Program-made: the position numbers and the translations under genes | The notes under the pieces: model-generated | What the model saw: only the letters and a program-made list of their open reading frames with translations | The model's database searches: none | Told to the model about the DNA's origin: nothing | Part shown: positions 22,392-57,287 of the stretch, in pieces | Numbering within the stretch: the stretch's first letter is position 1 | How the letters are laid out: each line of letters begins with the position of its first letter | Origin: Haliotis cracherodii | Lineage: Eukaryota | Reading direction: 5' to 3' | DNA length: 64,000 nt | Assembly (NCBI RefSeq): GCF_022045235.1 | Contig: NW_027266266.1 | Location: forward strand, 17,732,001 to 17,796,000

Positions 22392-23125
22392 ATGCCGGCT
22401 GATGGTTTGAAAGTTTATTTGTATGATATTTATTTTAATTCAAAACACCCAGCCTCCTCTGGTCCCAACCAGCTGTATCACGTTGTGAAAAGGGATGCGA
22501 AATTTGATATCAGTTACATCACGTTAAGAAGTGGATGCCTATTCACTGCAATGACCTTTACATTACAGATTCAAACGAAAATGGGTCGTGTCTTCAGGCT
22601 TACTTAATCGATGGGACATTGATTTGGCTGATGTCTCCAATATAGCTTCAGAAAATGAAGGAATCAGATACCTACTCACAGCTATCAACGTGTTAACAAG
22701 GTATATGTGGGTCGAACCGTTGAGAAATAAAAAGACCTGAATCATTCAGGCCTTGGAGAAGATGTTCTCTCAGGCAACACTGCCTAAGACTATAAGATCG
22801 GATAAAGAGGTAGAATATAATAATAATCATGTGGAAGCCTTTCTAGAAAGTAACGAAATAACCTATTATGCGACACAGAATGAAACTAAAGCTTCCTTTG
22901 CTGAACGAGTGATCAGATCATTGGAAACAACTATGTACAGGTATTTTACTTACAAACAGAGCTATTTTTATGAGGATATGTTACAAGACTTGGTGAATGA
23001 TTATAATCATAGACCTCACAGATCATTAAATGAACGTTCGCCTAAGGACATAAACAAGACTAATGAAGCTTTAGTATTGAAAGAACAATACATTGATTCT
23101 CTGGGAAAAAAAACATTTAAAACAT
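22392..23125 (+). mobile_element. Polinton/Maverick-type retroviral-like (rve) integrase relic
   Basis: IYFNSKHPAS, WDIDLAD, YLLTAINVLTRYMWVEPLRNK, IRSDKEVEY, ETKASFAERVIRSL, YNHRPHRSL; stops and frameshifts; cut off by a minisatellite. Confidence 0.85.
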
Positions 23126-24250
23126 CGCACCCCGAGTCGGAGTATCAGTGCATGTGTGTCATCACTCACCAAAAGTGTGCATCAGTGCGTGTGTGTCATC
23201 ACTCACCAAAAGTGTGTATCGGTGCTTGTGTGTCTTCGCACTCAACAGTGTGTATCAGTGCTTGTGTGTCATCACTCCCCAAAAGTGTGTATCGGTGCTT
23301 GTGTGTCTTCGCACTCAACAGTGTGTATCGGTGCTTGTGTGTCATCGCACTCAACAGTGTGTATTGGTGCTTGTGTGTCATTGCACTCAACAGTGTGTAT
23401 CGGTGCTTGTGTGTCATTGCACTCAACAGTGTGTATCGGTGCTTGTGTGTCATTGCACTCAACAGTGTGTATCGGTGATTGTGTGTCATTGCACTCAACA
23501 GTGTGTATCGGTGCGTGTGTGTAATCACTCCCCGAAAGTGTGCATCAGTGCGTGTGTGTCATCACTCACCAAAAGTGTGTATCGGTGCTTGTGTGTCTTC
23601 GCACTCAACAGTGTGTATCGGTGCTTGTGTGTCATCACTCTCCAAAAGTGTGTATCGGTGCTTGTGTGTCTTCACACTCAACAGTGTGTATCGGTGCTTG
23701 TGTGTCATCGCACTCAACAGTGTGTATCGGTGCTTGTGTGTCATCGCACTCAACAGTGTGTATCAGTGCTTGTGTTTCATCACTACTCGACAGTGTGCAT
23801 CGGTGCTTGTGTGTCACCGCATTCAAGAGTGTGTATCAGTGCTTGTGTGTCATCGCACTCAACAGTGTGCATCGGTGCTTGTGTGTCACCGCATTCAAGA
23901 GTGTGTATCGGTGCTTGTGTGTCATTGCACTCAACAGTGTGTATCGGTGATTGTGTGACATCGCATCCAACAGTGTGTATAGTTACTTGTTTGTCATTGC
24001 ATCCAACAGTGTGTATTTGTGCTCGTGTGTCATTGCATCCAACAGTGTGTATTTGTGCTTGTGTGTCATCGCACTCAACAGTGTGTATCGGTGCTTGTGT
24101 GTCATCGCACTAAACAATGTGTATTGGTGCTTGTTTGACATCGCATCCAACAGTGTGTATCGGTGCTTGTGTGACATCGCACCCAACAGTGTGTATCGGT
24201 GCTTATGTGTCATCGCACCCAAAAAGTGTGTTTCGCTACTTGTGCTGTCA
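23125..24250. repeat. 36-bp minisatellite (same family as the 37- and 38-bp arrays)
   Basis: cggtgcttgtgtgtcattgcactcaacagtgtgtat with period 36 (23401, 23437...). Confidence 0.95.
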
Positions 24251-24946
24251 ATCACTGGTTTGTGTTTGTTGTTTGACGCCGCAATCAGCAGTAGTCAAGC
24301 TATATGTCAATCATGCCAGCGCGTGTACGAGCGAATTATACAAGAAAATAGTGATGCAAAATATAGCTACATATAGGCATCCAAATAATTATGTTGAAAA
24401 GGGTTTTTGAGCAAAGTGAAAAAATCCTAACATTCCCTTCCTTTACTATATGTACTCTTCAGTAGGTAGTGAAACTCGACCGTCATATAAGAGGCGGTCT
24501 AAATCGTTGTTTAACAAGCGGCATTCCACATTACCTTCTATAAGTGTGGAGCTTGTAAGACAGAGTTAAATTCCTTATTATGAACGATTTTGCTATTTCC
24601 GTGGCTCCAAAAAGTATATAAATATATTTAATGTGAATACCAAGTTATGTTTATATGTGAATACTATGCCACTATAGGAAAAAAGTACCTCTCGCCATAT
24701 TACACTGAATCTCCTCTGATGAAATTCACCTAGCTAATGCAAACAGGTGATAATCTTGTTGTTCATAATATGGATGTGTTCTTGGACAAAGCCTACATAT
24801 ATATACTGTTATATTCTTAACTCCGTCATGTGTGATTTAGGATGTATTAATGTGTTATGGGCAGGTGACCTGTTACTGAATAAATTGTCTGCCTGTCTCA
24901 GTACGAAGTGCGTATTTTATACTGATAGTCTTGTCAAAACAAACGA

Positions 24947-26581: not shown

Positions 26582-27631
26582 TATAATGTAAATAAGACCT
26601 TGTAAGTATTTTACAGTCATAGCAGCAAAGTACAATCACAGCTGTTGCTATTTACTAAAACCATGTATTCAAGGTGTAACACTGCAGCTGTATTGAGTTA
26701 TGTCCCTTGTAAAAACTTTTATGTAAATAAAATTCATAAATGTATGTTTACTGTTCAGTACTGGAAGCTAAAGTTATTGCATTGTACTTGTACTTTTGGT
26801 TCTTGTGCCCTACAACGAATAAACATGCCTGTGAGTTTGTCTGTTTGTCTATCTGTCTGTCTTTACGTCGTATGTACAAACAGGATATATTTCTTCTTGA
26901 GATTAGCACGTGAACAATCACTTGATACGAATATAACTTTGAGAGTAAACTTGCCCCTTGGTGTAGGTCACAGGTACGAGCGCCTGTTTATTATCAGTTA
27001 GCTCCTTCGACAAGCATGTGATACTTGGGGCATTTAGTTGAAGGTGAGATCATAGATAAAAGTACTCCCTTAGGCCAAAAATTATTCGTCAGTCGTACAA
27101 AGTGATAAGTGAGAAAACGAAAGCAATGGAGAATTGAGAACTAATAAATCAAATCATATTTGGAAATATATTCTGATTAGAAAACGTGATTAAAATGCAG
27201 ATTTTAAATTTTAAGGGCAAGAGAGAGAATGTGCAGTCATCTTTTGCCTTACAATGGGCGAGGAGACGTTGATATTGTGGATTGCTGTGCTGAACTAAAC
27301 CATGCGTTATTTTAATAAGGGTAACCGCTGTTTACATCTAATATATGTGAATAAAGTACATGTAAAGTGCTGTCTTTAAGTATATGCTGCTACATACTTA
27401 GATCACCAATGACAGGACTGTGTGCCACATCAGGTAAGTTGAGATAACCTAGTGTTCTTTGCACCCTTGACACGGTGACACTGACTGCGTAATGATAACC
27501 CAATGTGTATACTTGTACTTGTACTCACGCCAGCCACTCCGTAGTAGAAAGCGTCGTGTTATACCCAGAGGTACACGCTCACATCACGCTAACGGACAAG
27601 GACATCTCAGGGGATATTGTACATTCTGAGA

Positions 27632-29095
27632 ATGGCCGAGTTTAAATGTCTTTCCTGGTTGCTGTCATGTACCTACCTGATCTGTCTTTGTAACTGCCAG
27701 GACAGTATTGTGTCTGTCATACAGAGACTAGATCAGTTTCAGGAGGAACTGCTTGATAACAAGGATGATATGATCCGTATGGAGAAAAGGATACTTAATA
27801 TCATAGATGTCGCTAAGACATCATTGAGAGCTGAATTGAAGGAAAACATACGGGATCAGGTGAGAGAAGCCATGGCCGAGATTCTACAAGGAGAGTCTCT
27901 TCAGGACATGGTGAAAAGTCAGGTCGTCTCTGAAGTGTGGCATCTGAAACAGGGCTACCATCAGATGAAGAGGCAATTGCGTCATGTCTCTAGATCCCTC
28001 AAAGACTTTCAGGACGAGACGGGTGAATTTCATGAATCTGTGCTGAAGAAAGCAGATGTGTGGAATCGGGACAACTCAAGTGATACCTGTGTCAGAGATA
28101 AACACAGACTGGAAATAGAACTACGGAAGTGTGATATTTGTGCTGCTGATCTACAGAAAAATATTGAACGATTCATCGTATTGAACGAGACATGCCAGTC
28201 CCAAATATCACAACTGAAAACAGCGCTTGCTATGCCTGCTTCATCCACCGCCCCTGTAAATGTCACCTCAACCCCCAAATCACCAGTGTCAACCACGTCA
28301 GTGACGACACCCAGCCCAGAGGAGGAGAAAAGTAGGATCCTGATTGCTCCAGGCTGGTCAGGCACCCAGCACCAGTTCCGTCAAATCAACATTCACAGTA
28401 ACTCACTTAGTGTCTATCAGTATCACACCATGAAGTATGTGACATCTGTTGCATACATAGTTAAGACAAAGAAACTTCTGATAGGACTAGCCAACCCTGA
28501 TAAAATAGTGTCATCTACACTAGACACAAGTCACGTGACGGTGCTAAGAGAAGGTGTAGAGACATATGGCATGGCCGTGGATGAAGATCGAGACATTGTA
28601 TTCATAGCCACGTATCAACCACGATACTCAATCAACCGCATGTCTACACAAGGGAAAGACTTTACTGCCATCATTGACTTGTCCAAGTACGGAAGCTATC
28701 CCTTTCAAATTACTCTTGACACAAGGAGAAAGAGGATATATGGGTGTAATGAGGGGAAACTGTTCACAGTGACCTATGATGGTCAAGGTCTGGCAACATT
28801 AGTCACAGGAGGTAGCCTGTTTACTGTAACCCTAGATCAGACAGCTGGTGTGTTGTATTATAACATTGAGAAAAAACTTATGAAGATGACAGTGTCCACT
28901 AATGTGAGTACAGAGGTGACCACACTGAGCGCCGTCCCCTGGAACCTGAGACTGTATAGAGACATCATCTACTTCAGTAGCTGGGGTTCCCCTATTGTAG
29001 GTGCAGTGGATGTGACATACAACAATGCTGTATGCACTCTCCAGTCATTATTCATGAAGGGTGCTACTGTATTACTTATGTGTTTGATTCCCTGA
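27632..29095 (+). CDS. Secreted coiled-coil / YWTD-like six-bladed beta-propeller protein, paralog 1 (487 aa, uninterrupted CDS)
   Basis: Intact ORF conserved in three copies; signal peptide MAEFKCLSWLLSCTYLICLCNC|QDS; heptad-rich aa ~25-200; S/T/P linker 201-234; ~40-aa blades such as YGMAVDEDRDIVFIAT, QITLDTRRKRIYGCN, TVTLDQTAGVLYYN. Confidence 0.9.
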   Translation: MAEFKCLSWLLSCTYLICLCNCQDSIVSVIQRLDQFQEELLDNKDDMIRMEKRILNIIDVAKTSLRAELKENIRDQVREAMAEILQGESLQDMVKSQVVSEVWHLKQGYHQMKRQLRHVSRSLKDFQDETGEFHESVLKKADVWNRDNSSDTCVRDKHRLEIELRKCDICAADLQKNIERFIVLNETCQSQISQLKTALAMPASSTAPVNVTSTPKSPVSTTSVTTPSPEEEKSRILIAPGWSGTQHQFRQINIHSNSLSVYQYHTMKYVTSVAYIVKTKKLLIGLANPDKIVSSTLDTSHVTVLREGVETYGMAVDEDRDIVFIATYQPRYSINRMSTQGKDFTAIIDLSKYGSYPFQITLDTRRKRIYGCNEGKLFTVTYDGQGLATLVTGGSLFTVTLDQTAGVLYYNIEKKLMKMTVSTNVSTEVTTLSAVPWNLRLYRDIIYFSSWGSPIVGAVDVTYNNAVCTLQSLFMKGATVLLMCLIP

Positions 29096-29194
29096 ATTCC
29101 ATGATGGATATTCTACCATGAATTTTGGAAAGAGTCAACTGAATCGTTTAGAATCACAAAAAAACATCTCTGATTAAAAAGCTCATTTGGCGGC

Positions 29195-29267
29195 CACTGT
29201 TGCATACGCTCTCCAGTGACTACCCATGAAGGGTGCTACTAATTCACTTATGTGTTTGATTCCCTGA
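29195..29267 (+). pseudogene. Duplicated terminal coding fragment of the propeller gene (TVAYALQ*LPMKGATNSLMCLIP*)
   Basis: Second copy of the last ~24 codons, 172 bp downstream of the first, followed by a second 3'UTR start. Confidence 0.9.
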
Positions 29268-31140
29268 ATTCTATGATGGATATTCTACTTTAAATATCGA
29301 AAATACTCAACTCAGTTGTTTCGAATTACAATAACCAACAGCTGATTTAAACAGCTGATTTGGCGTCCACATCACCATGGAAACTGGCATTTATAGAAGT
29401 ACTTTTTTCTCAGTCATTGTTGGTAGACATTTTATTGTACATTATATTGTATGAATCTTCGTTACAAAGTGCAGAGGTTCCGTCATTCAAAGCACGAGTG
29501 GCAATAGATAGTGGAAGGAAAACACAATGGAACCCGACTGAGTGAGTGTATTTCCAGTTTTGGGGACAAAAGTTAGCTTAAATTAGGCACCTTTCTATAT
29601 CCGACTGTGACGTCACATCATTTGCGTCACAATGAGCGATAATATTTATGCGCTGCGTGGATTAAAACACAGTACGTTTATCAAGTTCCTTCCAAGCGCG
29701 TGACACCTTACATCGCTGTGAGGAGCATGTACGTTTATCTCTTATTCTATTATGAATTTGGAAATTACTCGATTCAGAGGTTGTCATATCACAATAAAGC
29801 CCCACTGATTGAAACGGCCGATTTGACGGCCGCATCACCGCGGAAGCTAATATTAATAGAATAGTACTGTTTTAAGTCATTGACGGTGGGCATATTTCGG
29901 AACGATGAGCGTTCGGTTACAAATTCAATTTAGTGCGGTTAAATCTACATGTAACCTCACTCTACATTGAAAACACAATCAGTCCATCTCCTACATTTTC
30001 CAACACACGCATATTTGAACCTCCATATATGTCCATCATATAGCAGTAGATTATTAAACTCATTTCGATTATTTGAAGTCGGCAAAAGAGTTGATATAAC
30101 TGTACAGCATCGTGTCCCTGATAGAGTGATTTGCAGATTATAGGTTGGAAATAAAATTAAGTTTAGGTTGTAAAGTCGGTGATATGTACTGTAAGATTTT
30201 ATCAATAAATACATCTTCAGAGTTCCATTGTTATTATCCGTTTTTCCAACTTACACAAAACAATGCAAGCTTCTGTACGAAATACCTCTGCTGACACTAA
30301 GGCACCCACCGTCTTTATATTCTGGGAGGGGCCTTGAGATGTTTTTGAACTAATAATTTGTTCCAGAAGAAAATGGAAGATATCAATTTGACCGCAGGTT
30401 TTCCCCAAAAGCCAATTGCCTGGAGGGGGCTGTGTTTCTTGAAGATACTCTAATGTGAAAAACCTTCATTGTGGGGGCTCTTCATTTCACAGAAATACAT
30501 TGTATGTTTTGAAGCAGAGGCTGAAGACATAGCCCCAGAACATTATACAAATACTTACTCTTGACGTAGGGGTCGGGTCCTCGGGTCCAATGACCTCGTC
30601 AAGAGTAATCAGTCGTTGTCGGTATGCCAAAAATCACTTTAAAGTAAGGTATAATTTGCGTATACTATATCAGTATTCCAGGCTAGCTATATAAAGTGCA
30701 AGCACACAAGCACGTTGCTCTTTAAGTGCAATATTCTTGAACGCGATGTGAGACCCCAATTCACCTGAGACTCTTGTGAGCTAGGGGAGATCACTCTTAC
30801 CGCCATGTCCGACAACCCCATAGTGAGACAAGTGCTCGTAATATGTGTGGCGACACGTGTTTAAAAGAGGAAGGCCAGTTTTGAGTCATTCAATTAAAAG
30901 GTTGCTCGACAATCGTTAAATTGGAAATGGAGAGTTTCCTATTAACATATTAATACCATTTTGTTAAATATACACAGTGGAGGATAATGTGTAAAGCGAA
31001 TGGAGATTTTCAAACGCTATCATCAATCCAATTATTCAAATTAAGGTTTTCAATATTAACTCATGATGGCTGGGGTGCTGGGATAGTCTGGCGGTTTGAG
31101 CGTTTGCTCGTCACGCAGAGTGCCCGGGAAAAATATTAAA

Positions 31141-32160
31141 ATGACACTTGGTGGCCGAGTAAAGAAGATACTTGGTGGCAGAGTAAAGAAGACACTTGGT
31201 GACAGAGTAAAGATGGAACTTGGTGGCAGAGTAAAGAAGACACTTGGTGGCAGATTAAAAAAGGGAATTGGTGGCAGAGTAAAAAAGATACTTGGTGGCA
31301 GAGTAAAAAAGACACATGGAGGCAGAGTAAAGAAGACACTTGGTGGAAGAGAAATGAAGACACTTGGTGGAAGAGTAAAGAAGACACTTGGTGGCAGAGT
31401 AAAGAAGGGACTTGGTGGCAGAGTAAAGAAGTCATTTGGTGGCAGAGTAAAGAAGACACTTGGTGGTTGATTAAAGAAGATACTTGGTGGTAGAGTAAAG
31501 AAGACACTTGGTGGCAGAGTAAAGACTCTACTTGGTGGTAGAGTAAAGATGATACTTGGTGGCAGAGTAAAGAAGGGACTTGGTGGCAGAGTAAAGAAGA
31601 CACTTGGTGGCAGAGTAAAGAAGACACTTAGTGGCAGAGTAAAGACGTTACTTGGTGGCAGAGTAAAGACTTTACTTGGTGGCAGAGTAAAGAAAACACT
31701 TGGTGGCAGAGTAAAGACTTTACTTGGTGGCAGAGTAAAGAAAACACTTGGTGGCAGAGTAAAGAAGACGCTTCGTGGCAGAGTAAAAAAGACACTTGGT
31801 GGCATAGAAAAGAAGACACTTGGTGGTAGAGTAAAGAAGACACTTGGTGGCAGAGAAAAGAAGACACTTGGTGGCAGAGTAAAGACGTTACTTGGTGGCA
31901 GAGTAAAGAAGACACTTGGTGGCAGAGTAAAGAAGGGACTTGGTGGCAGAGTAAAGAAGACACTTGGTGGCAGAGTAAAGAAGACACTTGGTGGCAGAGA
32001 AAAGAAGACACTTGGTGGCAGAGTAAAGACGTTACTTGGTGGCAGAGTAAAGAAGACACTTGGTGGCAGAGTAAAGAAGGGACTTGGTGGCAGAGTAAAG
32101 AAGATACTTGGTGGCAGAGTAAAGAAGATACTTGGTGGCAGAGTAAAGAAGATACTTGGT
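31141..32160. repeat. 24-bp satellite (cttggtggcagagtaaagaagaca)
   Basis: Direct inspection; paralogous larger array 57288-59910 has the same left flank. Confidence 0.98.
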
Positions 32161-33044
32161 GTGTTGTCGAGCTTCTGTGTTTCTGATGTGCGTTGTTGTG
32201 ACAGGTTCAAGCTACCCCGCACTTTAATCCACGAGAATGCGCTCACACAATATTAACATGAGTTGGCACATTATGTGAATCTGCATGCAGTGCCTGTTCG
32301 TATGTGCACACTCCTGATCGGATTCGGAGTCAGAACAGGTTTTGTTTGTTGTTTTGCTTGTCATTTGTGTTGGCTTAACATGGGGCGAGGCTCCATACCT
32401 GGTCACAATGTCTTATGACATGGATAAAATAGTGCTGACTCACTCCACCACTCGTGGTATGTCTAGACTTGAGATGTTTCTTTGTTTATGTGATATTTGT
32501 TATCAGCTTTTACTTATCAAATAGAAGTAATCAGAAATGGTGTTTCAATAGGGTGATTAGGATTATGACAGAATTCCAATACACAGATACTATGGTGTTG
32601 CTAGAATATATAAAATGATATACTCATTAAATGATTTTGATTTCTAAGATACAAAGCCTAATGAAATGTAGAATGTTAAACAGCGATTAGACGGTCTTTT
32701 ATATGACGGTTTAATGTCACTAACCTTCTGAAGAGTACTTTGTATTAAAAATGAAGCGATCTTTCACTGTGCTCTTAACACTTTTTAACATTATAATCAT
32801 TCGGATACCTAAATGTGGCTTGATTTTGCATCCCTATTTTCTTGAAGTATAATACTGCAGAAGGCTAGAGTTTTGTGGAGTCTTCACATTCTCTGGTTCT
32901 GTGTTGGGTTCGACTAGGCAGCGCTTCCTGGGTAAAGTTCCATTCGCTGTCTGGCTTGCGTGTAGATTTTAAACTGCAAATAATAACAATGCTGATAATA
33001 ATAGTAATATTAATACTATTAAAATATATTAAATACATGGCATA

Positions 33045-33652: not shown

Positions 33653-34192
33653 GTGTGTACCGGTGCTTGTGTGTCATTCACTCCCCAACAGTGTGTATCA
33701 GTGCTTGTGTGTCATTCACTCCCCAACAGTGTGTATCAGTGCGTGTGTGTCATTCACTCCCCAACAGTGTGTATCAGTGCGTGTGTGTCATTCACTCCCC
33801 AACAGTGTGTATCAGTGCTTGTGTGTCATTCACTCCCCAACAGTGTGTATCAGTGCTTGTGTGTCATTCACTCCCCAACAGAGTGTATCAGTGCTTGTAT
33901 GTCATTCACTCCCCAACAGAGTGTATCAGTGCTTGTGTGTCATTCACTCCCCAACAGTGTGTATCAGTGCGTGTGTGTCATTCACTCCCCAACAGTGTGT
34001 GTCGGTGCTTGTATGTCATTCACTCCCCAACAGTGTGTATCAGTGCGTGTGTGTCATTCACTCCCCAACAGTGTGTATCAGTGCTTGTGTGTCATTCACT
34101 CCCCAACAGTGTGTATCAGTGCTTGTAAGTCCTCACAGCCCACCAGAGTGTATCAGTGCTTGTGTGTCATTCACTCCCCAACAGTGTGTATC
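33653..34192. repeat. 38-bp minisatellite
   Basis: cagtgcttgtgtgtcattcactccccaacagtgtgtat with period 38. Confidence 0.95.
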
Positions 34193-34249
34193 AGGTCAAA
34201 TAAAGAGGTCTGTGTTAAAAAAACATTAAATAAATTACCAGACTATCAA

Positions 34250-37200
34250 GATATCTATTGTCATGTAAAGAAGTATATCATGACATCCCCTAGCCATAAG
34301 CAGTGGCCACGTGTTGTCTTGATTTACCACAAGCATAAAGTTCGCAATTTCTTCTCCCTCAGAACTCTACCAACCTGACCGATACTTCAGCAATTCAAAA
34401 CAGAACCATGTGCTATTTCTAACCCTTTTGGAAATATACTTGAGTAAATGAGTTATTAAGTTGAGTGAAAGACTATGATGTTTGAATGATGGAGTAAGTG
34501 GAGTAAATGATATAATGAATGATTGAGTGAATAATTGATACCCCCGTGGCTCATCAGCTGATCTGGATGAATCCTCACCGTCACATACTGAAATAAAGCA
34601 AAATACTTGTGTAAATGAGTTATTAAGTTTAGTGAAAGAATTTTGAATGATTGAGTAAGTTGAGTAAATAATTGAGTAAGCCGGGAGGATCATTCGGATG
34701 AGTAAATGATGGTGTAGGCTGATCAAATCATTGAGTAAGATGAGTGAAAGATTGAACAAGTAGAGTGAATGATTGCGGGAAGCATTTTGTAAATCGCGCA
34801 ATTGAGTAGTTTAGTGATTGAGGAAGTTGAGTTCATGATTGAGTGAATGATTCAGTAAGCTGAGTAAATGATTCACTTAGCTGAGTACATTATTCAGCAA
34901 GTTGACACAATGATTCAGTAAGTTGACGGAATGATTAAGATGAGTGAATGATTAAGATGAGTGAATGATTGTGTAGGTTAGGTGAATGACTGAGGGTAAG
35001 TACCAAAAATACATTCATTCAAAACTTAGAATGAACCATTTACATGCAGTCGATGCGCGGCTTCTTTACCTTACATATCAAATGAATGATATTTTATGAC
35101 TACTGGTCATCTTTCACAGTCAAAAGAAATGTGTATGGTGTCCAGGAATCCCCCAGGGTACCCCACAGCTGCATAAAATACGCACACTATGTCACCGTTA
35201 CCCAGTCACTTTTGAGTTCTTCAAATGTTTACAAATATGCATAAAAAACAAAAGTGACTAATGGCCAATGTAGCCATTTTAGTTCGTACTCCTCTATGTC
35301 CCACAGGCCGTTTCTACTGAACGAATAAACGCATCATGTATACACGAACAGATGCAACTTAGAAGTCACCTGAAACAGCACCCAAAGCAGAATTATTGTC
35401 TAACTCACTGGTTCATTAATACCCAACAGAACAGCCCCCGGGAAGTAGAAATATGTTAAAAACCCATAGGGAATTGGGCCCAGCGTTTATAATTTTAATT
35501 TCCGACTGACAGTTTTCTCAGATTCATCTTCGGCACCGCAGTATAAAAGTTCTCTAAATCTCGAGGCCCAGCGTTTAATGGAGATCCTGCATTTATTGTT
35601 TTCAGACACCCCTACGCCGGCGTTTAATTGAGGAAATACGGTAACCTGCATCTATCCAGTCCATGGAACACAGCCTTGTTATCAGAGGTCACAACTGACA
35701 ATGTTACACCCTCGCAACGGAGATGTCATCGTGACATCACACGCAAAGGGTTAACACACCTCTCTGCAAAACAAACTGTCGTCTCAAAGTTTTCAAAACA
35801 TACTTACATTTCCAATGACCTCGAAATGTATACATCACATATTCAAGTCTGACGGTAACACCCAGCACTTAGTCTATTCTTGCACAATGCAAATGATGAC
35901 GATACATCTGCTCGTCCTAAATACTGCGAGGCATCCCCTTTCCCAAATGACGTTGTCTACATTATGAGCAACCAGAACTGTGAATTTTACCTTCACTGCA
36001 ATAATAACAATAAAAAAAATCAATCCCTTTTCACCACAGATTCTACGACAGCACTATTTACGCAGTTTGTTACATCAACTCCATGAAAAAAGCGGTAGGC
36101 TTTACTTCTTGTACATATTGCACAGTTTCGCTTCCTTCATATGTCTTCAGAACTACTTCCTTAAGGCATAACATCTTGGGGACGGTCGGGTAGCCTAGTG
36201 GTTAAAGCGTTCGCTCGTCACGCCGAAGACCCGGGTCCGATTCCCGACATGGGTACAATGTGTGAAGCCTATTTCTGGTGTCCCCCGCCGTGATATTGCT
36301 GGAATATTGCTTAAAGCGGTGTAAAACCATACTCACTCACTCACTCATAACATCTTGGGATAACAGTGTAAACATCCAATGTCAAACTACCAAAAGTACA
36401 ATCGCAGTCAGTCCTCAATACAATGAATGGTACAATTTGCAAGTCAGCCCTCATGGTAATGGTACAATGTGCATGGAATACCACACAACGGGACAAACTA
36501 TTTTTCCTGAAGGATTTCTAATTGAGCCTACAGCGAAGATTGTCAGCCTGCTGTGTACATAAACCGGATCATACCATGAACATTAAGCGAAATGAATGTA
36601 AATTTATTTAAATTTGTTAGGATCTTGTATACGTAGTATAAACTTAAAGCGAGTGATATTTATTAGCCTGTATTAGGAATATTTTTATATACTGTATATA
36701 TAACAGTGCAGCCTTGTCAATGGGACATTTCACCCTCACATACCACGAGGAAACTCACCCACTTTGGGTTCATTGGGTTAAACAATTCATTTTCACAGAA
36801 TTTGACTGAATAAACACACCATTAAGGCAAACAAACAATTATTACAATTAACACTGCTTTGGCAAATATCAATCAATTACTACATTTCCATGTCAATGTG
36901 AGTTTTAGAGAGGGGTTTTTAATCTTTTTTAATAATGTCCAACATATCCTGATACGATATATGTTGACGCCAGGTCAATTTCTCAAGGAAAGTATTCGCA
37001 CTATTAGTTTGACAATATTCTGATAAGTGTTTCAAAAATACTAGTATAAAGAACATTGATTGGTCACAACACATATTGTGGTATAGAGAAATATATCCTT
37101 GATCGTGTAAGCTTGAACTTACAATTTCCGGTTTCCGAATGGCTTTGGCAATGACTGTTGAGGTTTCCAACAAAAAGCCCTTTGGGATGGCACTTGCTGA

Positions 37201-39012: not shown

Positions 39013-40311
39013 GTTCACAGTCGCACACTGATCATTTCCTAATAACACAATCTACTCCTGACAACCTTTTCCGGGACAACGATGACTCATTGTTCACCAA
39101 TTGCGTGACCTTGAAGTTTAATATGTAGAAGCACTTCATTAGAGAAATGTAAATTACATATAAATCCTAAAGACGGTCACTCTGTAAATTTAAAATATCT
39201 TTGCACAATTCAAAAAAAAACTTTCCGAGAAAAGGATCCTTTGTACAGGAGTCTGATTGTATACAGATTGTGATTGTGGTTAAATGTAATATGCGTATCA
39301 TACTATATTTAAATGTAAAACAAATACCTGCTGTTACGAAATAAGTATTTACCCAAAACTGCCCGTCCTTACATGTAAATTTTGCACTTGTGTTGAGCTG
39401 TGTCCCTTGTAAACACTTTTATGTACGCTTCATAAATCTATGTTTACTGTTCAGAACTGGAAGCTAAGGTCATGCATTGTATTTGTACTTTTGGCTATTG
39501 TGCCCTACAACTGAATAAACATGCCTGTGTGTTTGTCTGTGTTTCTATCTGTCTGTCTTTACGTCGTATGTACAAACAGGAACTATTTCTTCTTGAGATT
39601 AGCACGTGAACAATCACATTGTGCGAGTATGACTTTGAGAGTAAACTTGCCCCTTGGTGTAGGTCACAGGTACGAGCGCGTGTTTATTATCAGTTAGCCC
39701 CCTTGACATGCATGTGTTACTGGGGGCATTTAGTTGAAGGTGAGATCATAGATAAAAGTACTCCCTCCGTCAGTCGTACAAAGTGAGAAGTGAGAAAACG
39801 GAAGCAATGGGGAATTGAGAACTACAAAATTCAAATTATATTGGAAATATATTTTGATTAGAAAACGTGATTAAAATGCAGATTTTACATTCTAGGGGCA
39901 AGAGAGAATGTGCAGTCATCTTTGGCATCACAATGGGGAGGAGACGTCGTTATCATGGATTGCTGTGATGAACTAAACCATGCATTATTTTAATAAGGGC
40001 GACCACTGTTTAATCTAATATATGTCAATACAGCACATGTAAAGTGCAGTGTTTAAGTATATACTGCTACGTACTTAGATCACCAATGACAGGACTGTGT
40101 GCCACATCAGGTAAGTTGAGATAACCTAGTGCTCTTTGCACCCGGGACACGGTGACACTGACTGCGTAATGATAACCCAATATGTGTAAACATGTACTTG
40201 TACCTCAAGACAGCCACTCATTAGTAGAAAACGTCGTGTCGTACCAAGAGGTACACGCTCACATCACGCTAACGGACAAGGACATCTCAAGGGATATTGT
40301 ACATTCTGAGA

Positions 40312-41775
40312 ATGGCCGAGTCTAAATGTCTTTCCTGGTGGCTGTCATGTACCTACCTGATCTGTGTTTGTAACTGCCAGGACAGTATTGTGTCTGTCAT
40401 ACAGAGACTAGATCAGTTTCAGGAGGAACTGCTTGATAACAAGGATGATATGATCCGTATGGAGAAAAGGATACTTAATATCATAGATGTCGCTAAGACA
40501 TCATTGAGAGCAGAATTGAAGGAAAACATACGGGATCAAGTGAGAGAAGCCATGGCCGAGATTCTACAAGGAGAGTCTCTTCAGGACATGGTGAAAAGTC
40601 AGGTCGTCTCTGAAGTGCGGTATCTGAAACAGGGCTACCATCAGATGAAGAGACAGTTGCGTCATGTTTCCAGATCACTCAAAGACTTTCAGGACGAGAC
40701 GGGTGAATTTCATGAATCTGTGCTGAAGAAAGCAGATGTGTGGAATCGAGAAAACGCAAGTGATACCTGTGTCAAAGATAAACACAGACTGGAAATAGAA
40801 CTACGAAAAAGTGATATTTATGCTGCTGATCTACAGAAAAATATTGAACGATTCATAGTATTGAACGAGACATGCCAATCCCAAATATCACAACTGAAAA
40901 CAGCTCTTGCTATGCCTGCTTCAACACCCGCCCCTGTAAATGTCACCTCTATCCCCAAATCACGAGTCTCAACCACGTCAGTGACGACACCCAGGCCAGA
41001 GGAGGAGAGAAGTAGGATCCTGATTGCTCCAGTCTGGTCAGGCACCCAGCACCAGTTCCGTCAACTCAACATTCACAGTAACTCACTTAGTGTCTATCAG
41101 TATCACACCATGAAGCAGGTGACATATGTTGCATACATTGCTAAGACAAAGAAACTTCTGATAGGATTACGGATCTCTGATAAAATAGTGTCATCTCCAC
41201 TGGATACAAGTCACGTGACGGTGCTAAGAGAAGGTGTAAAGACATATGGCATGGCAGTGGATGAAGATCGGGACATTGTATTCATAGCCACGTATGAACC
41301 ACGATACTCAATCAGCCGCATGTCTACACAGGGGAAAGACTTCACTGCCATCATTGCCTTGTCCAAGTACGGAGGCTTTCCAAGGGAAATAACTCTTGAC
41401 ACAAGGAGAAAGAGGATATATGGGTGTAATCAGGGGAAACTGTTCACAGTGACATATGATGGTCAAGGTCTGGCAACATTAGCCACAGGAAGTAACATGT
41501 ATGCTGTAACCCTAGATCAGACAGCTGGTGTGTTGTATTATAACATTGAGAAGAAACTGATGAAGATGACAGTGTCCACTAATGTGAGTACAGAGGTGAC
41601 CACACTGAGCGCCGTCCCCTGGAACATGAGACTGTACAGAGGCACTATCTACTTCACTTGCTATAGTTCTCCTATTGTAGGTGCAGTGGATGTGACATAC
41701 AACACTGTTGCATACACTCTCCAGTCATTATCCATGAAGGGGGCCCGTGCTTTACTTATGTGTTTGATTCCCTGA
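40312..41775 (+). CDS. Secreted coiled-coil / YWTD-like beta-propeller protein, paralog 2 (487 aa)
   Basis: Colinear, gap-free paralog of 27632-29095; intact ORF. Confidence 0.9.
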   Translation: MAESKCLSWWLSCTYLICVCNCQDSIVSVIQRLDQFQEELLDNKDDMIRMEKRILNIIDVAKTSLRAELKENIRDQVREAMAEILQGESLQDMVKSQVVSEVRYLKQGYHQMKRQLRHVSRSLKDFQDETGEFHESVLKKADVWNRENASDTCVKDKHRLEIELRKSDIYAADLQKNIERFIVLNETCQSQISQLKTALAMPASTPAPVNVTSIPKSRVSTTSVTTPRPEEERSRILIAPVWSGTQHQFRQLNIHSNSLSVYQYHTMKQVTYVAYIAKTKKLLIGLRISDKIVSSPLDTSHVTVLREGVKTYGMAVDEDRDIVFIATYEPRYSISRMSTQGKDFTAIIALSKYGGFPREITLDTRRKRIYGCNQGKLFTVTYDGQGLATLATGSNMYAVTLDQTAGVLYYNIEKKLMKMTVSTNVSTEVTTLSAVPWNMRLYRGTIYFTCYSSPIVGAVDVTYNTVAYTLQSLSMKGARALLMCLIP

Positions 41776-43252: not shown

Positions 43253-46200
43253 AATGCGCATGCGTCAGAACAGCAAGTCGCTGAAAAGTCTTCTCCACCA
43301 AAATCATCTTATATCTGTATCATTATCAGATACTGTGACGCAAAAATCAGGTAAGGTGACTATGAAGATACCTACAATGGACTCATGTTAGTGAATCATG
43401 AAGATGGTTTTAGGTTTTGCTTAAAATCAAGTGTCCAAAATATGTAGAAATGTTTAAGGAGAATTTACACAAGTGGACTAGTGCTGATTGACTGAGCGTC
43501 CGATTAATCAACAAACAATGGTCAGCCCAAACAGAGTCAGTGAAGCATTGAGTGGCCCTGTCAGCGAGGAAGATGACCTTCGACACGCTACACAAAGTGT
43601 GGATGATATAGAGAATAACATTTTCATTGAAATACACACACGCCTTGGAAAACTAGATCGAATTTCTTTCGAAACTGAACTTCTGGACACATACAATGAT
43701 GATGAAGAAAAACTAAACGAAGTGAGACAAAGTCTTTATGACGTAGCCAAGGAGACTCGACACGATACCCCAAATGGATATCTACCAAAACATGTACAAA
43801 GAGAACATTCCAGGAAGTCTGTGACTGAGAAATATGCGTCTGATGTATATTGCCTCTATGGTTTTATTACACACACAATCCCCTCTCATATACTGGAAAA
43901 ACAAGTACTCAACAAAGGCAAATCAAACGCACGTCCCTACAACGTACTTGGAGATAGTTTGCTGGATACACAAAGAGGTAATGATCTTTTGACCCTAATC
44001 TATACTACGCAGAGCTGGTTTGACTGTCTTAATGATAGGTTTGACTTCGCGACTAAGGTTAAGGCTAACCAGCGAGGATGTAGAGGGGAGGGCGGTGTGG
44101 CAATTTTAGTTAAGAAAATTATACACAGGTACACTGATATATGTGAATGTGAGTATGATAGTTTTGTAGCTGTGAAACTCTCCCGTCCCCAGTGTGCTGA
44201 TATGTATGTAGTGTGTGCTCTGCTCCCCTCCACTAATCACAACACAGTAGTGTATGAGGAGAGTGACAAGGAAGTGTTCGACGTTGTTGATGAGCTATCA
44301 GTTATGTTGTTCTTTGTGGAGATTTTAATACAGATCTTGTAAATTACCCAGCATCCCCTCGCTCTACTGTACTGCATCCATACTTGAATACAGGAAACAT
44401 GGTACCAACATCATACAACTGTGGTGTCATTCAAGGTCAACTCAAGACATTGTGCAACAAGGCTGGAACACAGTCATCTCTGATTGATAATATATTCTTG
44501 CCAGATGCTCTTCAATCATCTGTGTTGACGACCTCTGTCAATAACAACATCGATTTCGAGATATCGGATGATTCACCAGTAGTGGTATCATTCCTTAGGG
44601 ATGCGTTCTTAACAGAGCAAAATCTATGGACTCCCCCAACTTACAAATGGCAGAAGGCGAATGGCCTTGAACTGAAGGATGACACCCTTCCAGACATGAC
44701 ACATGCTGACAGCGATATGATGGAATATTATTTTGATGCTATATTGAGCACTCTCCACACGTCAACAGCAATGTACATCCCAACAGGATACTACAGACCC
44801 TTATTGGAGAGGATCTAGTCTAGACTACTACCACTACCAGATTCGTCATGCTAGACGACAATGGATATCTCAAGGTAAACCTGGAGGAGATGCACATGGC
44901 TCTTATCAATAGTATATGGCAGTAAGATGCAACTTCCCTCGACAGAAAAGAAAAGCAATCGGACAGACACAAGTATGCAGACCCGAACTCTGCCTGTGAA
45001 GTGGACATTGGTGAATTTTATAGAAGTGTCAGGAAACAGAGGAAGACTAATGCAACATGTACATCTCTACTGTATAAAGACAAGACGGCCAGCACACCCG
45101 AGGACATCTGCAATATGTGGACTGGTTATTATGGGGATCTGCTGTCTCCTCTCGGTAGACCTGAGTTTGAAACGGACTTTTATGAGGAAACAAAATCAAA
45201 GGTTTGTGATATAGCAAACAGTAACATATCTGAGAACGATCCAATCCTGACGACAAGTATTGTTGCATCTAATGAAGTGAAATCAACCATTAAGAGGCTG
45301 AAAAACAATAAGTCTCCTGGACCAGACTGTATTACTGTAGAACGCCTCTATAATGCTGACAATCTTCTGTTTAAACATCTGGCACACCTCTACAATATGA
45401 TGATCAGTACTTGTTACACGCCTGTCATGATGAGAACTGGAACTATTATTCCCATCTACAAAGGGAATAATAAAGATAAATGTAACCCAGCTAATTAAAG
45501 CGGTATCACTCTAACATCCAATATTGGGAAGGTTTTTGAGAGGTTGTTGCTAGACAGACTGGAATCCTACATCAAAACCAGTAATCCTGATTTCCCACAT
45601 CGTCTCCAGTGCGGCTTCCGGAAAGAGCATGGCGCCAGTGTTGCTACATATGTTAAAAGAGGCTATTTCCCATTAACAAGATAGACACTCAAATATATAT
45701 GTTGCCTTTCTGGATAACAAAAAGGCCTTCGACAGGATGTGGCATGAGGGGCTGCTACTGAAACTATACAATCTTGGTGTGAAAGGCCGTGCATGGCACA
45801 TTATCCGTCAATCTTACCAAGAAGCAAGTGCTTGTGTTAAATACAATGAGAGGACAAGTGATTTGTTCAATGTTCATCAAGGAGTAGGAAAAGGTCGCGT
45901 GCTCTCAGCATGATTGTTTCTTGTCTATATTAATGACCTGATATCTCAGTTTGATAATCTACAATGTGGACTAATTGTTGGTAAGGAGCTGATGACACTA
46001 CTGTTGTTAGTACGAGTGTACATGGACTGAATATGTCTCTTGATACTATCCACAAGTATGCGCGGCGCTGGAGACTGACGTATAACGCCAATAAGAGCTG
46101 TGCCTTGTCTTTTAGCAATAACAGAAGACATTGTAATAGACCTGTGTTCAGAATTGGCGTTGTGACAATGAAGTACCAAAGTAGTACGATTTATGCCGGC

Positions 46201-51453: not shown

Positions 51454-52843
51454 CATTCACTTTATTCAGATGTATTGTAGGCCATAGGCCCATGATACAA
51501 TGGTTACAGTGTGGTAATGGGAGTTGGAGATCCCAACAAACTTTGCCTTAGATTCATAGCTTTCAGAATATACATGGCTAGTTTCTTAACAGTAAATGGG
51601 TTGGTAGATGACATTAAAATATTGTACTTATGTCTTGTCGGGAACTCATAATAATGCAAGGATATATATTCTGACCTCAAAGCTTGATAACAATCACAAA
51701 TTAAAATAAGGTGATACTCATCTTCGATATAACCATGTTTACAGACAGTACAAACTCTTTCTCCTCTAGGTTCCTTGTTATGTCTACCTGATTCAATTCT
51801 TAGATGATGAGAACTACATCTGAAACGTGCCATAATACTTCTAAATTTATCACATGATAGCCTTGTAATATACATTTCAACACCAAATGTTTGCTTGTAC
51901 AAAGAATAATAATATGATTTCGAACTTTCATGTATAGCTAAATGCCAGTCTTGTTGGTACGATAATTTTAGCCTCACAAAAAAATCCTTTATGAACAAAG
52001 GTATATTTGCAACACACTGTTGATCCCATATAAAACCAAATCCTGCTGACACAATTATGTGTCTAATTTTGGAAACCCAGTTTACTTTACCATTACTTAC
52101 AGCTTGCAGTTGCATATTATAGCATTTCTTTACATATCTAGATTCTGGCATTTTCAAAATTTTGCACCAATATTTAACAACTCTTTTATAAGAATAAATG
52201 TATAGAGGATATCGGCCACATTCACCTCTTATAACGTGATTTGAGGTGGAGACCTTAACACCTAAAAAGCGCTTACAAGCCCTCATGTGGATACTTTCAA
52301 TATCATTACAAATTTCGGGACTCAGACCCCATATTTCTGCTCCATATAGCAAAATTGGGCTAATTTTGGTATCAAATATTTTAAAAAATAAATGAAAGGG
52401 TATGGGCTTAAAGTTGGACAGAGATTTCAGTATGCCACATAGTACTTTCTTAGCTTGTAGTGCTGCAACCTTAACATGTTTACCCCATGATGAAGTTCTT
52501 GTAAAAGATAAACCTAAATATTTGTACGAGGTTACACACTCAAGACTGGAACCATCAAAGTTCCATTTCTCATACTTTGATAAAACACCACCTTTTTTAA
52601 AAACAATGACTTTAGTTTTTTCCAGATTAACACACAAATGGTAGGTATCACAAAAATATTTTAACGTATCAATACGTTTCTGGAGACCAGAAACAGTGTC
52701 AGAAAGCAAAACAACATCATCTGCAAATAATAACAAAAATAGTTGAATACGTTCAGGATGAAGCTGTATGCCTGTTGAACAAGATAATTCTATATCCATT
52801 GCCAACTCATTTATAAGCATAGAAAATAATAATGGACTTATTA
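51454..52843 (-). mobile_element. Young 5'-truncated LINE (L2/CR1-group RT C-terminal half) with 9-bp TSD
   Basis: Uninterrupted frame ISPLLFSMLINEL, LLFADD, YKYLG, CTVC..EDEYHLILIC to the stop at 51504; TSD tcgtcagtc at 51445-51453 and 52844-52852; empty sites at ~27086 and ~39768. Confidence 0.95.
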
Positions 52844-53389
52844 TCGTCAGTCTTGTAAAGTGAGAAGTGAGGAAACGGAAGAATTGCAGATTGAGAACTA
52901 AAAAAATCAAATTATATTTGGAAATATATTCTGATTAGAAAACGTGATGAAAAAATGCAGATTTTAAATTTTAGGGGCAAGGGAGAAAGTGCAGTAAACT
53001 TAACGTCTGAATGGGCGAGAAGAAGTTGTTACCATGGTTTGCTGTGATGAACTAAACCATGCGTAATTTTAATAAGGGCGACCACTGTTTAATCTAATAT
53101 ATGTGAATACAGTACATGTAAAGTGCAGTGTTTAAGTATATGCTGCTACATACTTCGATCACCAATGATAGGACTGTATTCCACATCAGGTAAGTTGAGA
53201 TAACTTAGCGTTCTTTGCACCCGGGACACGGTGACACTGACTGCGTAATGATAATCCAATATGTGTATACATGTACTTGTACCTCACGCCAGCCACTCAG
53301 TAGCAGAAAACGTCGTGTCGTACCAAGAGGTACACGCACACATCACGCTAACGGACAGGACATCTCAAGGGATATTGTACATTCTGAGA

Positions 53390-56449: not shown

Positions 56450-57287
56450 CTGCAGTCTTGGAACTTCAAACAAATAAAACAGGAAAGCCATGGTGCATGA
56501 ACAAGGTTCCAAAACGCTCTCTGACACCACTCAATTCGGGCCACTAAGATTATTGGTTTTGTTTTTGTTTGTGGATTTAACGCTCCACTCAGAAATATTC
56601 CAGCTTGCTCCGGTCTGTAAATAATAGTCTGGACCAGGCAACCCAGAGGTTATTTCTTCATCAGAGGTTTGATTGTCGTTCGTTGGTGAGTAAATATGAA
56701 AATATTCAACCTCATGAATGATAACTTCTGGTTTATTGCATTAACGAAGTTTTCATGTAGACTCTTACACCCTTCTCATTCAAGTTTGATGGTGTAAAAC
56801 TTCTAATGCAAATCACCAGAGGCATATATGTAGCCATGTAAAGTACAAGCACACAAGCACGTTGCTCTTTAAGTGCAATATTCTTGAACGCGATGTGAGA
56901 CCCCAATTCACCTGAGACTCTTGTGAGCTAGGGGAGATCACTCTTACCGCCATGTCCGACAACCCAACAGTGAGACAAGTGCTCGTAATATATGTGGCGA
57001 CACGTGTTTAAAAGAGGAAGGCCAGTTTTGTGTCATTGAATTAAAAGGTTGCACAACAATCGTTAAATTGGAAAGGAAGAGTTTCGTATTGACATATGAA
57101 CACCATTTTGTTAAATATACACAGTGGAGGATAATGTGTAAAGCGAATGGAGATTTTCAAACGCTACATCAATCCGATTATTCAAATTAAGGTTTTCAGA
57201 ATTAACTCATGATGGCTGGGGTGCTGGGGTAGTCTGGCAGTTTGAGCGTTTGCTCGTCACGCAGAGTGCCCGGGAAAAATATTAAAA

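Follow-up and report, generated by a model that had tools for sequence, protein, structure and literature searches.

Why should three tandem copies of an abalone gene keep the stalk of their product nearly identical and concentrate their differences on one face of its head? The question is raised by a 64,000-nucleotide stretch of the Haliotis cracherodii genome (the window), which contains three tandem intronless paralogs, A, B and C, all three with intact ORFs. Paralog A is a complete intronless coding sequence of 487 aa plus stop at 27632..29095 on the + strand, the strand of every feature given below; its ORF is intact and begins at a conserved Met that aligns across 20 paralogs, and an identical protein is already deposited in a public collection (P0001). 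The complete coding sequence of paralog B (L003; 40312..41775, head at 41014-41772, 89% aa identity with A) lies 12.7 kb past A, and that of paralog C (L002; 53390..54853, head at 54092-54850, 90% aa identity with A) a further 13.1 kb downstream. In paralog C the ORF is open upstream to 53261, the conserved Met being at 53390.

All three proteins open with a signal peptide and a stalk of roughly 178 aa in heptad-like helices, which a disordered Ser/Thr/Pro linker joins to a head of 253 aa. The predicted signal peptide of A (aa 1-22; 27632..27697) contains a hydrophobic N-terminal helix at residues 2-21 in the AF2 model. Judging from this signal-peptide-like N-terminus, the protein would be secreted, with cleavage expected to follow a small-residue motif. 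The stalk of A (aa 23-200; 27698..28231) is modeled in the full-length AF2 prediction as amphipathic helices spanning residues 23-86, 90-144 and 152-199, with a hydrophobic periodicity of 3.45-3.65 and a hydrophobic fraction at a/d positions of 0.67-0.86. The helical stalk would probably self-associate; a two-copy complex prediction of aa 23-200 gave a score of 0.08, which weighs neither way on oligomerisation. The Ser/Thr/Pro-rich linker (aa 201-234; 28232..28333) is predicted to be disordered from its composition and from pLDDT values below 50 at residues 201-231, and it is probably O-glycosylated.

The head of A (aa 235-487; 28334..29092) had been described in the first-pass annotation as a propeller and compared with those of LRP5/6 and nidogen, a description supported by the AF2 model, by Foldseek and by profile matches. 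The AF2 head model (pLDDT 96.6, pTM 0.92) has 24 strands in six four-stranded blades over approximately 250 aa, which is the YWTD layout, and the ring is closed by the C-terminal strand joining three N-terminal strands. In Foldseek, the solved YWTD propellers of ApoER2, LRP4, LRP6, LRP2, nidogen and LDLR matched the model with TMq 0.80-0.85 and E values of 3e-15 to 5e-12, and the best 50 matches were YWTD propellers without exception. A family profile compared with the PDB matched LRP2 (2.6e-57, over 12 stretches), LRP4 (5.6e-21), LRP6 (6e-13) and nidogen (5e-05), and distant phmmer matches (1e-12 to 1e-9) bear the Ldl_recept_b domain, PF00058. The predicted head is therefore a six-bladed YWTD propeller. 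It is a divergent one: the canonical Tyr-Trp-Thr-Asp motif is degenerate in six of the six blades, and a Pfam scan of A and 44 family members left both head and stalk unrecognised at the cut-off, with no match to PF00058 in any of the 44 and sub-threshold matches to DUF5050 in seven of them. A C-terminal EGF module is absent, the protein stopping two residues past the final strand, and Pfam detected no other domain. Look-alikes in the ESM Atlas, with scores of 0.77, were uninformative. An olfactomedin-like head was ruled out by the six blades, by the lack of a Pfam match to OLF (PF02191) and by the YWTD-only top matches in Foldseek.

The register of the strands was set from AVD/YW-like motifs and an LRP2 alignment, and the top and bottom of the propeller were assigned by DSSP strand order, that is, by secondary-structure topology and not by 3-D coordinates. 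By convention the b-c and d-a loops form the top face of a propeller (PMC3419727), and in YWTD propellers the top face receives the ligand and the bottom face the EGF module (PMC12667055; for LRP6, PMC7585440); contact residues of LRP6 include N185 and E73 (PMC7585440). Strand topology, read with that convention, bears out the earlier proposal that the variable loops, d-a and b-c, make up the top face. Both ends of the head are on its a-b/c-d side, and the variable face is accordingly directed away from the stalk. It would be the ligand-binding face of the protein, and its ligands may be fast-evolving extracellular molecules. The likeness to antibody CDRs that was drawn for this face would be an analogy only, and there is no hint of somatic diversification.

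Among A, B and C the manual counts of the first-pass annotation were reproduced exactly (Met numbering): aa 20-102 are identical in all three, and 9 of 178 stalk positions (23-200) vary, against 49 of 253 in the head. The variable motifs that it listed each lie at the place given, in d-a or b-c turns, and the d-a/b-c half accounts for 38 of the head's 49 variable sites (Fisher p=5e-6). The changes, which had been called often multi-nucleotide and radical, fit that description moderately: in the head, at least two bases differ in 7-8 of the 30-38 replaced codons, compared with 0-1 of 10-16 outside it, and BLOSUM62 scores are negative for 40-57% of replacements. Whole-head omega among the three is 0.65-1.23 and stalk omega is 0.13-0.31, indicating purifying selection on the stalk. 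The view that the stalk is frozen holds among A, B and C but not across 20 paralogs, where stalk omega is about 0.47 and near-invariance is limited to aa ~76-115.

It was also considered whether the variable sites might be scattered evenly over the structure, or dS raised in the head, and neither was seen. For the A/B/C pairs, NG86 dS comes to 0.12/0.07/0.07 (head) and 0.13/0.05/0.11 (stalk), and four-fold sites do not differ between head and stalk (p 0.23-0.75). With stalk and head equally diverged at synonymous and four-fold sites, gene conversion is rejected as the only source of stalk identity among A, B and C over the full length of the stalk. Codons 1-66 contain no synonymous difference among the three paralogs, and local homogenisation or nucleotide-level constraint is therefore possible at the 5' end.

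The three genes belong to a much larger family. A genome search gave 95 matches, including at least 18 full-length intact paralogs, with clusters at 14.4, 17.3-17.8 and 39.1-40.5 Mb on contig C3. Named relatives in the databases come exclusively from Haliotis. The family represents a lineage-specific tandem expansion, and we found no literature on this stalk-propeller family in abalone or other molluscs.

Selection was analyzed in 20 intact paralogs of this one genome with our own implementation of the codon models, in which relative branch lengths were fixed from M0. In the head, comparison of M2a with M1a gave an LRT of 188.5 with 19% of sites at omega 3.5; the M8-M7 comparison, which the first-pass annotation had suggested as a check, strongly favored positive selection (LRT 241), and M8-M8a gave 198. 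Over the range of models, 12-19% of head codons are positively selected, with omega 3.5-4.0. The stalk gave a weak signal (M2a-M1a LRT 8.1). All 26 sites with a posterior above 0.9, the posteriors being naive and not Bayes empirical Bayes, fall on the d-a/b-c half (Fisher 1e-9), and none of the 50 residues of the a-b/c-d loops is among them. When the head was divided into two segments with their own trees, the LRTs were 73 and 136, with 25 of 25 sites on the top half. The head is thus under recurrent positive selection located on the d-a/b-c face, and the diversifying selection on a single face that had been suspected from three genes is upheld by these LRTs and by the placement of the sites.

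In A, the hypervariable positions (posterior >0.9 under M2a/M8, placed by the strand topology map) are distributed over all six blades. They comprise aa 241, 242 and 244 in the blade 6 b-c turn (28352..28363); aa 269, 271 and 272 in the d6-a1 turn and the start of strand a1 (28436..28447); aa 287, 288 and 290 in the blade 1 b-c turn (28490..28501); aa 310 and 312 at the start of strand a2 (28559..28567); aa 328, 329, 331 and 332 at the end of strand b2 and in its b-c turn (28613..28627); aa 356 in the d2-a3 loop (28697..28699), with nine residue types among 20 paralogs; aa 374 in the blade 3 b-c turn (28751..28753); aa 395 in the d3-a4 loop (28814..28816); aa 435 and 437 in the d4-a5 loop and the start of a5 (28934..28942); aa 451 and 452 in the blade 5 b-c turn (28982..28987); and aa 474, 476, 479 and 480 in the d5-a6 loop and the start of a6 (29051..29071). 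Variation at the selected sites is many-way, with 7-9 residues per column among the 20 paralogs, and the sites are enriched relative to the rest of the head in Tyr (14% versus 6%) and Trp (6.5% versus 0.2%).

The contrast between the faces lies in replacements: tree dN is 2.59 for the top half and 0.73 for the bottom, and tree dS is 2.40 for the top, 2.00 for the bottom and 2.96 for the stalk. The top half overall has a tree omega of 1.08, and the 26 selected sites have a dN/dS of 2.85. Without a tree, pooled pN/pS over five independent sister pairs is 1.89 for the top loops (p=0.009), 0.39 for the bottom loops and 0.35 for the stalk, and nine of ten close pairs have a top-half omega of at least 1. 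In Haliotis asinina, the 26 head columns that vary most among 16 paralogs include 24 on the top half and 15 that match selected sites.

The best explanation, and one that we consider highly likely, is a tandemly expanding stalk-propeller family whose distal face is diversified by positive selection. Its architecture, its fold and the selection signal with its location are observed. According to this model, tandem duplication would generate secreted proteins in which a flexible, mucin-like linker joins a helical stalk to a YWTD head, and diversifying selection on the distal d-a/b-c face would recur following each duplication. Approximately 25 positions over the six blades, with many Tyr, Ser, Trp, Arg and Asn residues, would turn over at an omega of about 3.5-4, the blade framework, the loops of the opposite face and the stalk would be held by purifying selection, and gene conversion would homogenise parts of the framework between paralogs. 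The outcome would be a germline-encoded panel of heads in which one scaffold carries differing binding surfaces.

What such a panel would bind is a separate matter. Our preferred reading, held tentatively and at somewhat short of an even chance, is recognition of non-self, microbial or parasite; the main alternative is gamete or conspecific recognition. The same molecular evolution could serve gamete or conspecific recognition under sexual conflict, as with abalone lysin and VERL, or the binding of diversified endogenous matrix or shell ligands, with no pathogen involved. Abalone reproductive proteins are classic cases of positive selection, the named relatives of the present family are restricted to the genus, and no feature of the sequence is specifically immune. 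Nevertheless, at least 20 intact, tandemly expanding paralogs per genome with so many residues per column suit a repertoire more than a one-to-one lock-and-key, and a secreted stalk with a globular head is typical of soluble pattern-recognition proteins, among them collectins, ficolins and C1q-domain proteins. Neither argument is decisive, and we give the reproductive or endogenous account somewhat less weight. The non-self reading can be extended, with more doubt, to an undescribed humoral system of abalone, in which dozens of germline-encoded, stalk-mounted YWTD binders would act against microbes in the manner of pattern-recognition molecules or opsonins, their distal face diversified by duplication, framework gene conversion and positive selection. 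This would be the first LDL-receptor-type propeller to serve as a variable immune scaffold.

It is very improbable that the pattern is an artefact of mutation or recombination, in which short-tract gene conversion or local hypermutation would cluster the differences and produce a spurious omega above 1 without selection for binding. The paralogs are clearly mosaic: stalk and head trees are incongruent, head four-fold divergence is below that of the stalk in the pairs L003-L004 (p=0.003) and L004-L005 (p=0.0006), head dS is well under stalk dS in several paralog pairs, L008 and L017 share one tract that is 100% identical, and pS dips at codons 76-100 and 376-425. Recombination inflates site-model LRTs. 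Multi-nucleotide changes are found in about 20% of replaced head codons, and dS is 3.4 at the 26 selected sites, compared with 2.1 elsewhere. However, conversion and hypermutation strike synonymous and non-synonymous positions alike, yet dN/dS at the selected sites is well above 1 and dS differs by just 20% between top and bottom. Errors in the tree leave the pairwise tree-free tests unaffected, and restriction to one face in six blades, with the same columns in H. asinina, fits a structural or functional filter. Selection probably acts on variants that conversion provides, conversion being its complement and not its substitute; the somewhat higher dS at the 26 sites may reflect a mutational contribution there, or patches imported by conversion. 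Relaxed constraint, with the d-a and b-c turns as tolerant surface loops drifting neutrally after duplication and no adaptation, is scarcely credible: the whole-head omega among A, B and C and the top-half tree omega are both near 1, as it would predict, but models with omega <=1 are rejected (LRT 188 for M2a-M1a and 198 for M8-M8a, with a site class at 3.5-4.0), the a-b/c-d loops are equally surface-exposed and have a pN/pS of only 0.34-0.39, tree-free top-loop pN/pS significantly exceeds 1 and the ORFs are intact throughout.

Selective diversification of the distal face, to return to the favored model, places in a multigene family a fold that is otherwise a conserved docking module of the LDL-receptor family and nidogen, here with its docking face evolving several-fold faster than synonymous sites. 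Should the proteins prove to be expressed and to bind non-self, they would be a new scaffold beside FREPs, C1q-domain proteins, VLR-like LRRs and fungal WD40 NLRs, and a candidate gene family for abalone disease, including withering syndrome and vibriosis, in the endangered black abalone. If they act in fertilisation, they would enlarge the abalone model for the evolution of gamete recognition. Either way, with about 25 positions mapped on a very confident model, experiments on binding specificity would be easy to design.

The closest structural counterparts are the YWTD propellers of LRP5/6, LRP4, LDLR/ApoER2 and nidogen, which share the fold, homology at the profile level, a size of about 250 aa and the same ring closure. 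The hypervariable face of the abalone head corresponds to the ligand-docking top face of the YWTD receptors (PMC12667055, PMC7585440). Unlike those receptors, the abalone protein has no EGF module, no LDL-A/EGF repeats and no membrane anchor, its YWTD motif is degenerate, and its b-c turns are shorter than in its YWTD relatives in the profile alignment. The classical receptors are conserved and single-copy, whereas the abalone propeller is mounted on a helical stalk, multigene and diversifying.

In evolutionary mode the family resembles the fungal HET-D/E/R NWD (NLR-like) proteins, for which positive selection is reported at a few positions per WD40 blade, on the interaction face, together with sequence exchange between members (PMC4986451, citing Paoletti et al. 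2007); both systems combine diversifying selection on one propeller face with exchange within the family. HET-D/E/R differ in being intracellular, in having WD40 propellers and in carrying NACHT and HET domains. Within one such protein the repeats are near-identical, shuffle and vary in number, in contrast to the six dissimilar abalone blades of fixed number. The order of domains, with a signal peptide, coiled-coil stalk, linker and C-terminal propeller, is that of the olfactomedin proteins (myocilin, noelins and gliomedin). The olfactomedin propeller head (PMC6719662) is nevertheless five-bladed, of a different family, and conserved rather than hypervariable. Bivalve C1q-domain proteins, snail FREPs and coral tachylectin-2 are alike in being secreted and tandem-amplified, with a stalk or oligomerising region, a binding head and positive selection (PMC6835236, PMC2880987), although the head folds differ, being respectively a C1q jelly-roll, a fibrinogen domain and a five-bladed tachylectin. 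Positively selected sites of the coral protein neither cluster nor coincide with its binding sites (PMC2880987), whereas in the abalone family 26 of 26 fall on one face.

The three tandem paralogs in the window (contig C3:17,732,001-17,796,000), A, B and C, are each encoded on the forward strand by an uninterrupted ORF (27617-29095, 40297-41775 and 53261-54853) with a conserved Met start at 27632, 40312 and 53390, respectively, and with no internal stops and no introns in the coding region. They are spaced by 12.7 kb and 13.1 kb, their repeat units also contain minisatellites and retroelement fragments, and their flanks, where alignable, diverge by ~5-8%. A perfect splice donor-like AG/GTAAGT lies at 27432-27439, ~200 bp 5' of the A start, and is kept in all three copies; a TATA-like motif is found ~50 bp upstream of it and a pyrimidine-rich stretch ending in CAG ~100 bp downstream. 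This arrangement may mark a short 5'-UTR intron, so the description "intronless" is limited to the coding region.

The A, B and C proteins align without gaps. In the full-length AF2 model, a hydrophobic N-terminal helix (residues 2-21), which we read as a predicted signal peptide, precedes a stalk of three long helices (23-86, 90-144 and 152-199), a disordered Ser/Thr/Pro-rich linker (201-231, pLDDT <50) and an all-beta domain. The stalk helices are amphipathic, with a period of 3.45-3.65 and hydrophobic residues at 67-86% of a/d positions, which fits a coiled coil or helical bundle. Modeled separately from a 68-sequence alignment, the head (pLDDT 96.6, pTM 0.92) has 24 strands forming six four-stranded blades. 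Its top Foldseek hits are without exception YWTD propellers (ApoER2, LRP4, LRP6, nidogen, LDLR and LRP2; E 3e-15 to 5e-12, TM 0.80-0.85), and a family profile search matched LRP2 (2.6e-57 over 12 stretches) and LRP6 (6e-13), as well as LRP4, nidogen and LDLR; distant phmmer matches are Ldl_recept_b proteins. Both its fold and the profile matches place the head in the YWTD propeller superfamily. The YWTD motif itself is degenerate, a Pfam scan of family members gave nothing above threshold, and the chain ends two residues past the last strand, so there is no EGF module. Failing the Pfam repeat threshold and lacking the EGF partner, the abalone heads are a divergent, unannotated branch of the superfamily.

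We labeled the 24 strands with the help of the LRP2 alignment, recognizing strand a as AVD-like and strand b as YW-like. The chain runs first through b6, c6 and d6, continues with strands a-d of each of blades 1-5 and finishes with a6, closing the ring as LDLR-type propellers do. Blades of the up-and-down type have their d-a and b-c turns on one face of the propeller and their a-b and c-d turns on the opposite one. The d-a/b-c face is conventionally the top face (PMC3419727), and in YWTD propellers ligands bind on top, whereas the EGF module, which comes after the C-terminal strand, packs on the bottom (PMC12667055; LRP6-sclerostin, PMC7585440). Strand topology, from which we assigned the faces, places both chain ends of the abalone head on the a-b/c-d side, and the d-a/b-c face is therefore directed away from the stalk.

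The first-pass annotation had proposed that hypervariable residues cluster on one propeller face while the stalk is frozen. Its counts are exact: residues 20-102 (Met numbering) are identical in A, B and C, 9 of 178 stalk positions (23-200) and 49 of 253 head positions (235-487) vary, and each variable motif that it quoted occurs where it was placed. The clustering was also borne out, 38 of the 49 variable head sites being on the d-a/b-c half (p=5e-6). About a fifth of the replaced head codons differ at 2-3 bases, compared with 0-1 of 10-16 elsewhere, and 40-57% of replacements have a negative BLOSUM62 score.

At least 95 matches to protein A are present in the 1.18-Gb assembly, among them 20 distinct intact full-length genes with 62-90% identity. 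In the alignment of these 20 paralogs, the same columns vary repeatedly and long stretches are constant; 19 columns contain 7-9 different residues, and 17 of these are head columns located in d-a or b-c turns or in the strand ends next to them. The family also includes broken copies and more distant members with the same layout. One locus (L019/L026, contig C3, 17332298-17334501, minus strand), 80% identical to A, is divided into residues 1-158 and 151-487 by a ~720-bp insertion, has a retroelement-like ORF nearby and is probably a disrupted pseudogene; in-frame stops occur in copies L016, L022 and L024. The distant members L029 (C56:12599065-12603054), L030 and L034 (32-39% identity) retain the signal peptide, helices, Ser/Thr/Pro linker and propeller, and the L029 stalk contains an insertion of at least seven tandem copies of a ~25-residue acidic, Cys-containing repeat. 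Head-only ORFs of ~260-280 residues (e.g., L031-L033), 22-31% and mostly 24-31% identical to A, form dense tandem arrays on contigs C6 (7.6-11.0 Mb and 23.5/33.2-33.9 Mb) and C23 (15.26-15.38 Mb); these ORFs may either belong to other genes as exons or constitute a subfamily of heads only. Named homologs, from four Haliotis species, are in every case "uncharacterized protein", and a literature search found no paper on the abalone stalk-and-head propeller family.

Selection was assessed among the 20 paralogs of this one genome with our own codon-likelihood program (GY94/F3x4; branch lengths optimized under M0 and then scaled with relative lengths fixed), with naive empirical Bayes site posteriors and the stalk as internal control. 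For the whole gene, M2a was favored over M1a with an LRT of 184. For the head on its own tree, the LRT was 188.5 for M2a versus M1a (p 1e-41; 19% of codons at omega 3.5) and 198 for M8 versus M8a; M8 versus M7, the site-model comparison that the first-pass annotation had proposed for a larger paralog set, likewise favored selection (LRT 241; 12% of codons at omega 4.0). The stalk gave 8.1 (M2a versus M1a, p 0.017) with omega 1.8. Of the head sites, 26 have a posterior >0.9. All of them map to d-a or b-c turns or to the neighboring half of an a or b strand, whereas the a-b and c-d loops, with 50 residues, contain none (Fisher p=1e-9). Selected sites occur in every blade, most in blades 6, 1, 2 and 5 and fewest in blade 4. 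Head segments h1-118 and h119-253, each run on its own tree (M2a versus M1a, LRT 73 and 136), yielded 14 and 11 sites with P>0.9, all in the top half, and jointly recovered 25 of the 26. The pattern recurs at the protein level in 16 H. asinina paralogs: of the 26 head columns that vary most, 24 belong to the top half and 15 match the selected sites. Selected positions are enriched in Tyr (14% versus 6%) and Trp (6.5% versus 0.2%), and also in Ser, Arg and Asn, a composition typical of binding hot spots.

Mutation and gene conversion have to be weighed against selection. The first-pass annotation had named an even scatter of variable sites, or an equally raised head dS, as results that would speak against it; neither was observed. 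In comparisons of A, B and C, stalk and head have similar NG86 dS values (0.13/0.05/0.11 and 0.12/0.07/0.07), their four-fold sites do not differ (p 0.23-0.75), and omega ranges over 0.13-0.31 for the stalk but 0.65-1.23 for the head. The 20-gene tree gave dS values of 2.40 for the top half, 2.00 for the bottom half and 2.96 for the stalk, and dN values of 2.59 for the top versus 0.73 for the bottom half. A tree-free test, in which five independent sister pairs were pooled and pN/pS compared with 1, gave values above 1 for the d-a and b-c loops (1.89, p=0.009) and the whole top half (1.64, p=0.006), and below 1 for the a-b and c-d loops (0.39), the bottom half (0.43) and the stalk (0.35). Of 10 close pairs, 9 have a top-half omega of 1 or more. 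Simple tolerance of loops to change is ruled out, since conservation of the loops on the opposite face equals that of the strands.

The family is nonetheless a recombining mosaic, with stalk and head trees in disagreement. In several pairs the synonymous divergence of the head is far below that of the stalk (four-fold 0.05 versus 0.26 in copies L004-L005, p=0.0006), and L008 and L017 share a tract of 100% identity in blades 3-4; conversion, where active, thus homogenizes the head framework rather than the stalk, and the variable sites stand out against it. Among the 20 paralogs, pS at codons 76-100 and 376-425 (27857-27931 and 28757-28906 in A) is 0.12-0.20 versus 0.3-0.5 elsewhere, and these dips, in the most conserved stalk segment and in blades 3-4, point to gene conversion or nucleotide-level constraint. 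The somewhat raised dS at the 26 selected sites (3.4 versus 2.1) indicates that imported patches or multi-nucleotide events may feed raw variation there.

Other local features accompany the copies in the window. Codons 1-66 (27632-27829 in A) have no synonymous differences among A, B and C, despite 3-4 replacements in the signal peptide and in contrast to 6-7% divergence in the 250 bp upstream of the starts, which suggests local homogenization or nucleotide-level constraint at the 5' end. Gene A has a tandem duplication of ~172 bp across its stop codon (29080-29267), present as a single copy in B and C by alignment; the final 16 CDS bases (29080-29095) reappear at ~29252-29267, behind a diverged repeat of the codons before them. 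Each gene copy is flanked by long minisatellite arrays (23148-24410, 31056-32256, 33653-34378 and 57202-59747), which generate spurious repetitive ORFs on both strands, for example with FFTLPPS-type and CVSVLVCH-type units. Between and around the paralogs, ORFs at 51504-52910 and 62050-62922 (minus strand) and at 22753-23478 and 43488-44342 (plus strand) resemble, by eye, retroelement reverse transcriptase, RNase H, integrase and endonuclease.

The best-supported interpretation is that the distal, ligand-docking side of a YWTD propeller evolves under diversifying selection, the propeller being the head of a tandemly expanding family of stalk-and-head proteins that are presumably secreted; we infer secretion, stalk oligomerization and the nature of the ligand. 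Such selection would create a set of germline-encoded binding surfaces that share one constant scaffold. The earlier comparison with antibody CDRs holds only as an analogy, variable loops on a fixed frame, with no hint of somatic diversification. The main alternative for function is recognition of gametes or conspecifics, a process for which abalone are well known. We prefer non-self recognition, given the size of the repertoire, the number of alternative residues per site and a layout like that of collectin-, ficolin- and C1q-type molecules. Olfactomedins share this layout but have a different fold. Bivalve C1q-domain proteins and coral tachylectin-2 have in common with the abalone family an ecology of expansion and selection (PMC6835236, PMC2880987). 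The nearest conceptual parallel of the abalone heads is the fungal HET/NWD WD40 propellers, in which the interaction face is under positive selection and the repeats undergo concerted evolution (PMC4986451).
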